A stretch of 64,000 bases of DNA from sequence record OR496884.1; one strand, written 5' to 3'. Below are positions 51,347 through 55,187 of this stretch, in pieces (position 1 is the first letter of the stretch; every line of letters begins with the position of its first letter). The position numbers and the translations under genes are program-made. The notes beneath the pieces are model-generated. The model was not told where the DNA came from, did no database searches, and saw nothing but the letters and a program-made list of their open reading frames with translations.

Positions 51347-51826
51347 TTAAACCTTACATTTATTCCATGTCTCTCGACATAGTTTAATTGTTTTAGGGAA
51401 CAGATCTTTTTCCCACATCTTATTAAGAATCCGATAACCTATTTCGGTTGATGATCCGTAGTTAAGAGAAATGTGTAATTTTAATTCTGGGAAACTGTGT
51501 TCAAATCCAAGCTCTTGAAGTTCTTTAAAACGTCGCTGTATCGCATCAGATTCAAGAACTAATGCCAATGCGTAGTAATTCCCATTTGGATTACCCATTT
51601 TCTCAAAACCGATTACATTGGCAGTATAGACGGTATTATTAATTCCAGGATCAATCTCAGGATCACGTTTGTCATACATCAATGTCGCATGTATTTCATT
51701 TCCTGAAAGATTAACCATTTCCCATTTTTCTTCTTCCGGGAATTCATTAAGGAATTTGCTAACAGCAACATAAATATCAGAAATTGATTTAACGTCAACA
51801 CACAGTGACGAGTACCCCATTCCCAT
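51347..51826 (-). CDS. 2H phosphoesterase, Acb1 (T4 57B)-like
   Basis: Two HxT/S motifs (IHATLMY, LHISLNY), second preceded by GFEHSFPE; ~159 aa. Confidence 0.75.
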   Translation of the reverse strand: MGMGYSSLCVDVKSISDIYVAVSKFLNEFPEEEKWEMVNLSGNEIHATLMYDKRDPEIDPGINNTVYTANVIGFEKMGNPNGNYYALALVLESDAIQRRFKELQELGFEHSFPELKLHISLNYGSSTEIGYRILNKMWEKDLFPKTIKLCRETWNKCKV

Positions 51827-52158
51827 TATGCTTTCTCCGTATCGTATACGTTTCTTTCTTTGCGGTCTTCTATTCTAGTGTTTAATGCAAAGAGTGCTGA
51901 CTTCAAACCATCCAAAGCAATATCATTGTGCTGACATTTAAATTGGTTTTGATTGAATTTATCTAATCGATAAATACACATCGCAATGACAGCTTCCAAT
52001 GTAACGCCGTTGACACCAATTACCGGAGAACCATTTTGAAAACATATTTTACCCAATTCATTTTGTTGATTATCTAAAGCAACAAAATCGTTAATTGTCC
52101 CAGAGCGAATAATTGTACATATATCATCAGTGTGGATAATTTCAGTTGTCAATTCCAT
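51826..52158 (-). CDS. Tad1-like nucleotide-signal sponge protein
   Basis: FQNG...GVNG...E......RL..F....F.C..N..AL....A...L..RIEDRKERNV pattern; ORF-track start 52206 lies in a hairpin, ATG 52158 preferred. Confidence 0.65.
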   Translation of the reverse strand: MELTTEIIHTDDICTIIRSGTINDFVALDNQQNELGKICFQNGSPVIGVNGVTLEAVIAMCIYRLDKFNQNQFKCQHNDIALDGLKSALFALNTRIEDRKERNVYDTEKA

Positions 52159-52191
52159 TTTAAAATCCAAATAAAAAATAGTTGTAAGTAA

Positions 52192-52220
52192 AGAGGTAAC
52201 TACCAATGGTAGTTACCTCT
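52192..52220. terminator. Hairpin after 52226-52900
   Basis: 13-bp stem agaggtaactacc/ggtagttacctct. Confidence 0.7.
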
Positions 52221-52903: not shown

Positions 52904-55187
52904 CTAATCCTCTTGTATGGGTTCATCCAATAACAATGCGTTGTAATTCAATAAATTTGTTTTTGTTGCTGTTGCAAAACGACTTGTCTTAAACAGGCGG
53001 TTTGGATCCAACATTTGATGATGGCCAAAAGAACTATACGCCTGAATTCGACTAATCAGATCTGGCAACATAATGCAATACATTTGGTCCTAACACATTG
53101 TAACGCTTCACAGCGGCTTTAGTTGTTCGCTAAACAACATTCCGATACTTTCATACCGGTTGAGATCATATCTTCAAAACTACATCCTTGTAGTTTGCCT
53201 ACCGTTAACCCAAGCTTTTGGGTACATGATCGTTGAACACATCGTAGATTTATATCTAGGACTTCGTTGCTGATTGCCCATTATAATTTCTAACCCTTAG
53301 CACCCAATCTTCCAAGACTAGGTTATTAAGCATAGGTCATTTCTTTGTTTCTTTCTACCTTTCGGTAACATTCACGCTCACCCTCTCAGGTCACGTTGTA
53401 GTACAAAGAACTTTAGGGGTTTCCAGCAGTTAGATAGGTTTAACGACGGCAACCAAATTTTACCGTCAAAGTCTGCCATATACATTGTCCACTTAAGTGG
53501 TTTTCACCGATTGCGCTAATTCGGCATTCCGATAGTCTCCTACCGGTTGAGAGTACATCTTTCAGGTTCTAACAAAAGTTAGCCCGTCCCCACGTTCGGA
53601 TCGCGACATGATCCACTTACTCGTTGAGCACACTTCCTATCCATTCTCACGAATGTACTTAGAAGCTTCGCTGCTGATTGACTCTATTCAATTCTTTTTA
53701 AACCACACCATATACCGTTTCCAGTTCCGTTTTGGTGAATTGACCTAACAAGTTCGTTCCAGCAATTAGAGGGGTTTTACTTCGGCACAGAGTCTACCGA
53801 ATTCTTTTACAACTGTTATTGGAATACGGATTGATTTATCTTCAACGTCCCTATTAAACTTCAAAAAGAACGTTCGAGCTGAAAGATATTGGATAGAAGG
53901 ATTTCGACCAGCGATCGCCATTGCATACTGGTTTGTCTCTATCCAATCAAAGAACTCCTCAATTACTGGATGACGGTAATTGGCAGCGCTCCGAATGATT
54001 TCTTTTGCTTTTAATGGACTATAACCTTTTACTCGGTACAACCAGTTTGACAAATGTTTATCATAACACGTTATACCGTACAGCCAAGGCACTACAATTG
54101 TATCAGATCGACAAACACCAGATTCACCAGTAATGATAGAACGACCCGTCATAGGAAGTTTACCAGCACCAGCATGATAACGGATCATTCCTTTCTTCTT
54201 AAACACCACCGCTTCCATCACCTTATACATCACGGCTCGGAGTTTGGTAAAATGTTTACCCATTAATGTTCCGTTTTCTTCCGAACGAATGTCGTAAGCA
54301 GGAAACATATCAGCAATGGTAAAAAAGAATTTATCCAGGTCTGTCTTTTCTTTATTGATGTAACGATCACGTTGGTCGCTTTCAATAATGGTCGTTATTT
54401 TATTTGGTATTGGGAAATATTGAGAAACAGCAAGATGTTTAAACTTGTTCCAGAATCGGGAATAATGTTCCCTGGAACGCTCGTCTACATCTAGAATACC
54501 ACAAAGATCTTGGTTAACAGATGCATCAATAATTAAATCGATGTTTTCAATAAATTCGTTATAACCAAATTCAAGACCTAGTGTATCTCTAAACGCTTCT
54601 ATTTTACATGCTATTTTAAACGCCGTGTTGGTAGGATCTCTAAACCGTTTTTCTTTTCTAAGATCACTGTTAATCCAATATTCCACCAGATTAACTTTTG
54701 GTGTTTTGGTATTTAAGTTATCAAAGAAAACTTTACATATAGATGGATTAAGAAACCCTGCTACTTTATCAGGTGTTTTTAGCCATACTTTTGTTTCTAT
54801 TTTATCAACTAATGGCTTAGTGACAGAGTGTCCGCAATCTTCACAAACAACATTCATATCCAAATAAATGTTGGATCGATACTTTTTACATTCGCATGAT
54901 GCTACTGTATCAAAACAGTTTCCTTCATACTCCGTTCTAAGCAAGCTGATAATACGGTCTCGATCTTCTTCCTTATTAAAATCGAAATCGTTTAAATAAA
55001 TAGGTGTGTTGACAGAACAATTGTGTCTGGCATCATAGTCATCAAAATCCGGATACAAAGCTTTATAAAAACTTTGATCGTCCTTTGGAATTTTAAAACC
55101 AGTTTCTTTAATGATTTTATTAAAGATAGCCGACGGCAACAGGTTTTCTACTTCGTAAGGTTTTAAGATTTCCGCTAAAGTAGGCAC
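52904..55187 (-). CDS. nvRNAP catalytic beta-prime N-terminal subunit (phiKZ gp55-like), spliced join(55187..53796, 53476..53462, 53089..52904), 530 aa
   Basis: Zn site CECKK...CEDCG, RNPSI; splicing restores KEFG-ADFDG-DQMYC with the DFDGD Mg-binding motif. Confidence 0.93.
53090..53461 (-). mobile_element. Group I intron 2 (372 nt, IA-like, no ORF)
   Basis: Exon GACGGU pairs IGS GCCGUC with U-G at the splice site; P10 GACCAAAU/AUUUGGUU; P AACUGCUGGAAA, Q AAUCAGCAAC, P7 GAUCA/UGAUC; ends in G. Confidence 0.93.
53462..53476 (-). other. 15-nt micro-exon GCAGACTTTGACGGT encoding ADFDG
   Basis: Reads in frame between two group I introns and completes the RNAP active-site motif. Confidence 0.93.
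53477..53795 (-). mobile_element. Group I intron 1 (319 nt, IA-like, no ORF)
   Basis: Exon UUCGGU pairs IGS GCCGAA with U-G at the splice site; P10 GCAGA/UCUGU; P AAUUGCUGGAA, Q AAUCAGCAGC, P7 GAGUA/UACUC; ends in G. Confidence 0.93.

Follow-up and report, generated by a model that had tools for sequence, protein, structure and literature searches.

Two neighbouring endonuclease-less group I introns flanking a 15-nt micro-exon in the non-virion RNA polymerase gene of Aeromonas phage AerS_266 were probably acquired independently

Group I introns are already known from the polymerase genes of chimalliviruses. In phage PhiPA3, the virion RNA polymerase beta-like gene gp210 carries an intron with an active HNH nicking endonuclease, and intron state matters in the competition between related phages (Birkholz et al. 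2024, PMC11620839). Introns with the endonucleases gp56, gp72, and gp179 have been predicted in phiKZ, as cited in PMC10914365, and long-read transcriptomics of phiKZ reported no evidence of splicing. Here we analyzed 64,000 nucleotides (nt) of sequence record OR496884.1 (the window), which belong to Aeromonas phage AerS_266 (genus Chaoshanvirus), a phiKZ-like jumbo phage that encodes chimallin. We found that its gp55-like RNA polymerase gene holds two group I introns without an open reading frame (ORF), intron 1 and intron 2, on either side of a micro-exon encoding ADFDG. We name their insertion sites after the flanking codons, G|A for intron 1 and G|D for intron 2. The two endonuclease-less introns were probably acquired independently at these neighbouring sites.

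Like the PhiPA3 gp210 intron, the AerS_266 introns are group I introns in a chimallivirus multisubunit RNA polymerase gene and adjoin conserved catalytic aspartates. The PhiPA3 intron is single, carries an endonuclease, and lies in another polymerase and another subunit, whereas those of AerS_266 are ORF-less, paired, and located in a non-virion beta' gene. The orthologous gene of the OMKO1/phiKZ type has an intron 3 nt downstream of G|D, after ADFDGD, and a second intron about 130 nt upstream; it differs from AerS_266 in the insertion position, in the larger exon between the introns, and in the canonical P7 helix of both introns. Multi-intron phage genes are also known from Staphylococcus phage Twort (orf142 and nrdE), and phage T4 has its td, nrdB, and sunY introns. 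The AerS_266 introns resemble these as predicted self-splicing, subgroup IA-type introns at conserved codons of an essential phage gene, with several in one gene. The exons between Twort and T4 introns are, as far as is known, much longer, while the AerS_266 micro-exon has 15 nt, almost all of them guide-pairing sequence. It is textbook knowledge that group I introns insert at catalytic codons, are patchily distributed, and lose their endonucleases by decay. Hausner et al. 2014 (PMC3984707) took related group I introns at neighbouring sites of ribosomal DNA (rDNA) to be circumstantial evidence of reverse splicing. The locus studied here shares with these rDNA introns the presence of related introns at nearby positions of one gene and a possible ectopic spread through a guide match of 4-6 nt; it differs in that the gene is a protein-coding phage gene and the AerS_266 neighbours are not closest kin, the clean case being an environmental contig described below. 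Our literature search found no description of an ADFDGD hotspot with five positions in a gp55-like gene, of micro-exons of 9-15 nt, or of the AerS_266 twin introns, and neither the GenBank record of AerS_266 nor its genome paper mentions introns.

The gp55-like gene lies on the minus strand, adjoins the chimallin gene, and is the orthologue of phiKZ gp55, whose product is the N-terminal beta'-like subunit of the non-virion RNA polymerase. We used exon 1 and exon 3 as separate queries in homologue searches. Intron-less homologues read ...VKEFGADFDGDQMY... uninterrupted and continue past the end of exon 1 as ...VKEFGADFDGDQM. Removal of the 319 and 372 nt of the two introns gives a predicted splice product that reads ...GAATTCGGT-GCAGACTTTGACGGT-GACCAAATG and is colinear with these homologues; its predicted length of 1392+15+186 nt corresponds to 530 codons, and intron-less homologues have 529-531 amino acids (aa). 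The micro-exon supplies the ADFDG of the catalytic NADFDGD-type motif. In GenBank, WNV45883.1 ('RNA polymerase', 53766-55187) consists of exon 1 with nine intron 1-derived residues at its end, and WNV45882.1 ('hypothetical protein', 52904-53083, 59 aa) covers most of exon 3. The active-site subunit of a polymerase is thereby annotated as two unrelated ORFs, and the ADFDG codons have no annotation.

The two introns have a common architecture: P2 is absent, a P7.1 hairpin and the series P9-P9.1-P9.2 are present, and the tail carries ACAAUG. A script found P1, P10, P3, P4, P6, P7, P7.1, P8, P9, P9.1, and P9.2 fully paired in both. The P7.1 hairpin between P7 and the 3' strand of P3, one per intron (GGAUC/GAUCC; ACCCAA/UUGGGU), is a trait of the subgroup IA type, and the subgroup likeness was judged by these hairpins rather than by a formal subgroup classifier. 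Intron 2 also carries a long extension of P5. In a 94% relative, the P7.1 of intron 2 shows two compensatory double changes (53221/53210 and 53218/53213), which are evidence of selection on its fold, and compensatory changes occur family-wide in P3 and P7. The folding energy of intron 2 gave a z of -2.7. When the region was scanned alone with Rfam RF00028 at the E-value threshold, both introns matched the model along its full length; intron 2 scored 60.7 bits (E 1.2e-14), above the curated cut-off of 50 bits, and intron 1 scored 43.3 bits (E 2e-9; model 1-253). A default scan of the whole window (1-64000) at the gathering threshold reported neither intron, even with intron 2 at 60.7 bits, because the speed filters hide them. 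No minus-strand ORF of at least 40 aa was found within either intron, and these two are the only group I introns across the whole AerS_266 genome.

The pairings of the guides are listed in Table 1. In each guide the P10 strand lies directly 5' of the P1 strand, both P1 helices end in a U.G wobble at the splice site, and the reading frame is restored on splicing. Each guide pairs with exon bases on either side of its junction, the downstream side being an addition to the initial annotation, and so each intron can recognise its own junction independently and would splice on its own through P1 and P10. A scripted pairing check showed that the guide pairings occupy 11 of the 15 micro-exon bases without overlap, bases 1-5 in intron 1 P10 and bases 10-15 in intron 2 P1. 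These results agree with the initial annotation, made from the letters alone, in several respects: both 5' exons end in CGGU and both guides begin with GCCG, the target sites resemble each other (each after a GGU glycine codon and before G), all six sequence blocks said to be shared are present in both introns, and the P7 strands lie where they had been placed, with 5/5 pairs each.

We constructed maximum-likelihood trees of 19, 25, 29, and 32 introns from alignments of 295-302 columns. In every tree, intron 2 fell in a clade (93-100% bootstrap) with the G|D introns of pAEv1810, ACP1, and the environmental sequences L039, L161, and L040. The intron 1 lineage was monophyletic (99-100%) and, in the largest tree, stood on the opposite side of a 95/99 split from intron 2. 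Approximately unbiased (AU) tests rejected each grouping of intron 1 with intron 2 (p 0.0046, 9.5e-6, and 0.033), and forcing the two together cost 31-44 log-likelihood units (AU p 0.0046 and 9.5e-6). Identity in the multiple alignment was 54% between introns 1 and 2, 67% between intron 1 and the intron Ib of phage PS1, and 74-75% between intron 2 and its counterparts in FishSpeaker and pAEv1810; intron 2 was 74-78% identical to the G|D introns of pAEv1810, ACP1, and FishSpeaker. Searches by blastn with each intron matched other phages and did not find the neighbouring intron at E<0.01. A long P5 extension is present throughout the intron 2 clade and absent from intron 1, whose P6 and part of whose P5 (P5b) resemble those of the PS1 Ib/D3/L167 type. 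The global alignment of introns 1 and 2 nevertheless scores 9.5 sd above 200 shuffles. On these alignments, the two introns belong to one family and are built alike without being sisters, so that the kinship proposed in the initial annotation holds at the level of the family and each intron has closer kin elsewhere. They have blocks in common because both come from one broad family of chimallivirus polymerase-gene introns.

Close environmental relatives show that introns 1 and 2 assort independently. The relatives L038 and L040 (about 94%) carry both, with intron 1 at 97.5%, the micro-exon identical (15/15), and intron 2 at 95.6%. L161, from a CF8-like phage, also has both (85% and 89.5%) around an identical micro-exon (15/15), and CF8 itself, like ZPAH34, has a single intron at D|F. 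L039 has intron 2 only, and its G|A site is intact (GAATTTGGT|GCAGAT). The soil run X4 yielded a near-identical intron 1 (3 differences in 204 nt); the intron 2 body was not found there, and the exon-3 contig runs into a PS1 Ib-type tail, an arrangement read from short contigs. In total, four different genomic backgrounds have intron 1 at G|A. No orthologous locus came out of a protein-seeded IMG/VR search, and a search of JGI metagenome contigs with an intron-1-specific pattern returned no match.

The 3' ends of the introns point to further exchange and decay. The tail of intron 2 is longer in close relatives, by 73 bases in L040 to about 800 in L038, and has no extra bases in AerS_266. The extra bases of L038 (5091-5892) contain a 162-aa ORF and an upstream out-of-frame piece, which resemble a broken homing endonuclease. 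This suggests that AerS_266 intron 2, the local copy of a widespread G|D-resident intron, is the end state of endonuclease decay and has lost its endonuclease gene. The tails are also mosaic. AerS_266 intron 1 ends with a PS1-Ib-like hairpin, the P9.2 part of its tail being similar to the PS1 Ib tail and unlike that of intron 2, while the last 26 nt of L161 intron 1 match the intron 2 tail exactly. Such mosaics suggest that adjacent introns recombine, each exchanging 3' tail segments with whichever intron adjoins it.

We located the orthologous gene in about 100 phage records and used the distance between exon-1 and exon-3 matches to spot interruptions. Many genes are intron-less, for example those of OBP, Survivor, Kc263, pEt-SU, SXP01, D6, D9, LAh10, AH04, N1M2, AhC3_1, and pTD1. 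Many others are interrupted, at five insertion positions within the 18 bases coding (G/N)-A-D-F-D-G-D (Table 1). Genes with zero, one, and two introns all exist. Intron presence is patchy within a genus (D3 with, D6, D9, and LAh10 without), and other two-intron phages also have a tiny exon between the introns (PS1 and ACP1, 9 nt; VB_ZK_P1, 12 nt). HNH endonuclease genes lie in the G|D introns of PS1, HHBS8_1, and L167 and in the D|F intron of AVP1, and the G|D intron of Miami holds a long unannotated insert. Intron 2 is the local copy of a G|D intron that occurs in at least seven other cultured phages of several genera.

The initial annotation had proposed that one intron lineage colonised a second site 15 nt away within the genome, for example by reverse splicing at a CGGU target, and then diverged. 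We consider this origin very improbable for AerS_266. The shared CGGU and GCCG ends, the common architecture, and the shared blocks would fit it, and a case of this kind does exist. The contig L162 (Logan SRR25474810, 3950-4832), a distant relative at 49% aa identity, carries intron 2-type introns on both sides of the same 15-nt micro-exon (ADFDG), one at G|A and one at G|D, and these are sisters (83/79, then 98/98) that are 75-77% identical. Its G|A intron has a retuned guide (GCCCCA against the exon UGGGGU), and P7 reads GAUCA in one intron and GAGCA in the other (third pair U-A to G-C). L162 is a clean case of neighbour-site duplication, through either reverse splicing or endonuclease-driven illegitimate recombination, which are not told apart by sequence; the review literature holds no direct evidence for an RNA route of intron movement. 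The AerS_266 pair does not look like another example. Any grouping of introns 1 and 2 is opposed by the AU tests, by the lack of the P5 extension in intron 1, and by its P6 of PS1 Ib/L167 type, while each intron occurs without the other, intron 2 in L039 and intron 1 in X4. Furthermore, every allele with intron 1 has TTC GGT and every allele that lacks it has TTT GGT (UUUGGU in the RNA), so the C of CGGU travels with the intron rather than having pre-existed as a target. This C looks like a product of co-conversion or of selection for a C-G pair in P1. At least two colonisations of G|A have taken place, one by the intron 1 lineage and one by the L162 intron of intron 2 type.

Intron 1 belongs to a separate lineage specific to the G|A site. 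It is possible, though doubtful, that it came from another gene or from an unsampled donor native to G|A and spread by ordinary homing, rather than from a G|D intron. Its presence at one site in four genomic backgrounds fits such spread, and in the largest tree its weak sister (84/68) is a pair of introns in other genes of phiKp_32 and FishSpeaker. Support for that sister is weak, however; the tests do not reject a grouping with the PS1 Ib/D3/L167 clade of G|D introns (p 0.085-0.26), whose P6 and P5b are similar to those of intron 1, and the G|A site has no known endonuclease. No clear link to the GGU|G target emerged from the sites at which the other-gene introns of phiKp_32 and FishSpeaker are inserted. 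Several points weigh against two independent acquisitions, which we still regard as the probable history. The score of intron 1 (43.3 bits) is below the Rfam gathering cut-off (50 bits), and its folding energy is no better than that of shuffles (z -0.56). We infer the splicing of both introns because the phage is viable and the gene codes for the polymerase active site. The trees were built on sequence rather than structural alignments, the stem of intron 1 is long (0.24-0.38), and its union with the PS1 Ib/D3/L167 clade is neither supported nor rejected across the tests (AU p 0.07-0.26). There is also a remote chance that the pair goes back to an old duplication, after which the copies diverged fast and the P5 extension was lost.

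We then analyzed the P7 helices, whose changes had been described as compensatory and as perhaps preventing cross-pairing between adjacent ribozymes. The first part stands. Both AerS_266 introns keep the first two pairs, G-C and A-U, and in an alignment of 14 G|D and G|A introns each of these is the same in 13 of the 14 rows, while pairs 3 and 4 show covariation (C-G/U-A/G-C and U-A/C-G, respectively). Selection for unlike P7 helices in neighbouring introns, in contrast, seems unlikely. In its favour, P7 differs between the two introns of AerS_266, of ACP1, and of L162, where one recent paralogue has changed its third pair, and P7 alternates between GAGCA and GAGUA in the tandem introns of a further contig (L019). 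On the other hand, the PS1/PS2 introns lie 9 nt apart and both have the UAGUC strand, the two introns of OMKO1 have identical P7 helices, and two related tandem introns about 460 nt apart in L056 (600-1400; IMGVR_UViG_3300037249_000367) both have GAUCA/UGAUC. Introns 1 and 2 have the same P4 (UGCUGG/UCAGCA) and differ in one of the seven P9 pairs, so strand mispairing is not avoided in general. Both variants are also common in viral contigs: GAUCA/UGAUC is common to the entire intron 2 clade, to which the single-intron phages pAEv1810 and L039 also belong, and its flanked pattern occurs in >116 IMG/VR contigs; GAGUA/UACUC occurs in 22 IMG/VR contigs, none of them close to intron 1 by blastn. 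In the fetched IMG/VR loci, a regular-expression survey of tandem introns yielded only three neighbour pairs, a number too small for statistics. Judged by these sequences, the P7 variants are recurrent, inherited lineage markers, with compensatory changes at pairs 3 and 4 that lie below the invariant G-C/A-U guanosine pocket, and avoidance of cross-pairing is unsupported.

Two observations on P7 were made in the course of this comparison. L019 (187-2088, minus strand; IMGVR_UViG_3300043411_001634) has, in a 2-kb stretch of a 225-kb viral contig, four tandem group I introns of 72-77 bits each; their mutual identity is 74-79%, exons of about 100-200 nt separate them, and their P7 helices follow the order GAGCA, GAGUA, GAGCA, GAGUA. 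In three independent lineages, a G-C third pair (GAG..) goes together with G (AGAUGU) rather than A (AGAUAU) as the J8/7 base before the 3' strand, a pattern that is possibly a tertiary covariation.

Five insertion positions, a G|A site that was colonised independently at least twice, and the sister introns of L162 led us to a broader, tentative reading. The 18 bases coding (G/N)ADFDGD might be an arena in which related group I introns move again and again to adjacent positions, with retuned guides and swapped 3' tails, in which tandem paralogues diverge at the third P7 pair and the J8/7 base, and in which occupied sites shield the polymerase gene from the endonucleases of competitors. If true, a protein-coding phage gene would here offer natural evidence that introns transpose ectopically. 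Since intron endonucleases act in phage competition in PhiPA3, occupied polymerase sites may matter for interference between co-infecting jumbo phages. Reviews treat the movement of group I introns to new sites and their coexistence as an open question without direct evidence. The locus and its relatives form a compact natural series that includes empty sites, genes with one or two introns, exchanged neighbours, an endonuclease in decay, and one clear case of duplication into a neighbouring site; this series can be used for studying both processes.

Table 1 Coordinates of the introns, exons, and pairing elements of the AerS_266 gp55-like gene in the window, and phages with introns at the five insertion positions.
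Feature	Position	Strand	Description
Exon 1	53796..55187	-	1392 nt; C-terminal end ...VKEFG
Intron 1	53477..53795	-	319 nt; group I, ORF-less, G|A site; terminal (omega) G 53477
Intron 1 guide	53781..53791	-	P10 UCUGU 53791..53787 with GCAGA (micro-exon), 5/5; P1 GCCGAA 53786..53781 with UUCGGU 53801..53796 (exon 1), 6/6
Intron 1 P7 5' strand GAGUA	53618..53622	-	kept in 3/3 sequenced copies of the intron 1 lineage
Intron 1 P7 3' strand UACUC	53551..53555	-	preceded by J8/7 AAGAUG (canonical AAGAUA)
Intron 1 3' tail	53477..53528	-	P9.1 with UUAGCG loop, P9.2 hairpin CCAC-UUAA-GUGG, then ACAAUGUAUAUG
Micro-exon GCAGACUUUGACGGU	53462..53476	-	15 nt; codes ADFDG
Intron 2	53090..53461	-	372 nt; group I, ORF-less, G|D site; terminal (omega) G 53090
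Intron 2 guide	53445..53457	-	P10 UUUGGUU 53457..53451 with GACCAAA 53089..53083 (exon 3), 7/7; P1 GCCGUC 53450..53445 with GACGGU 53467..53462 (micro-exon), 6/6
Intron 2 P7 5' strand GAUCA	53227..53231	-	common to pAEv1810, ACP1 Ib, L039, L040, L161, L162 Ia
Intron 2 P7 3' strand UGAUC	53164..53168	-	pairs with GAUCA
Intron 2 3' tail	53090..53141	-	P9.1, P9.2 hairpin CGCU-GUGA-AGCG, then ACAAUGUGUUAG
Exon 3	52904..53089	-	186 nt; DQMYCIMLPD...IQED, stop TAG 52906..52904
J8/7-P7 covariation sites	53556-53561, 53618-53622 (window); L019; L162 4640-4710		
G|A site			AerS_266 intron 1
A|D site			Raoultella phage VB_ZK_P1
D|F site			ZPAH34, CF8, ACP1, PS1, AVP1
G|D site			AerS_266 intron 2, pAEv1810, ACP1, PS1, D3, FishSpeaker, Miami, HHBS8_1, VP4B, 2050HW
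After last D			OMKO1 (phiKZ type)

Two further observations concern the surroundings of these introns. Raoultella phage VB_ZK_P1 (L015, 513-823) has a 311-nt insert at G|D, after its A|D intron and the 12-nt exon (DFDG). The insert starts with a group-I-like guide (GCCGCC) and has no Rfam match, and it may be a degenerate or a different element. Just downstream of the AerS_266 gene (window 51347-52206) lie genes annotated as anti-Thoeris (Tad1-like) and anti-CBASS (Acb1-like), and this synteny is kept in all the relatives that were fetched.

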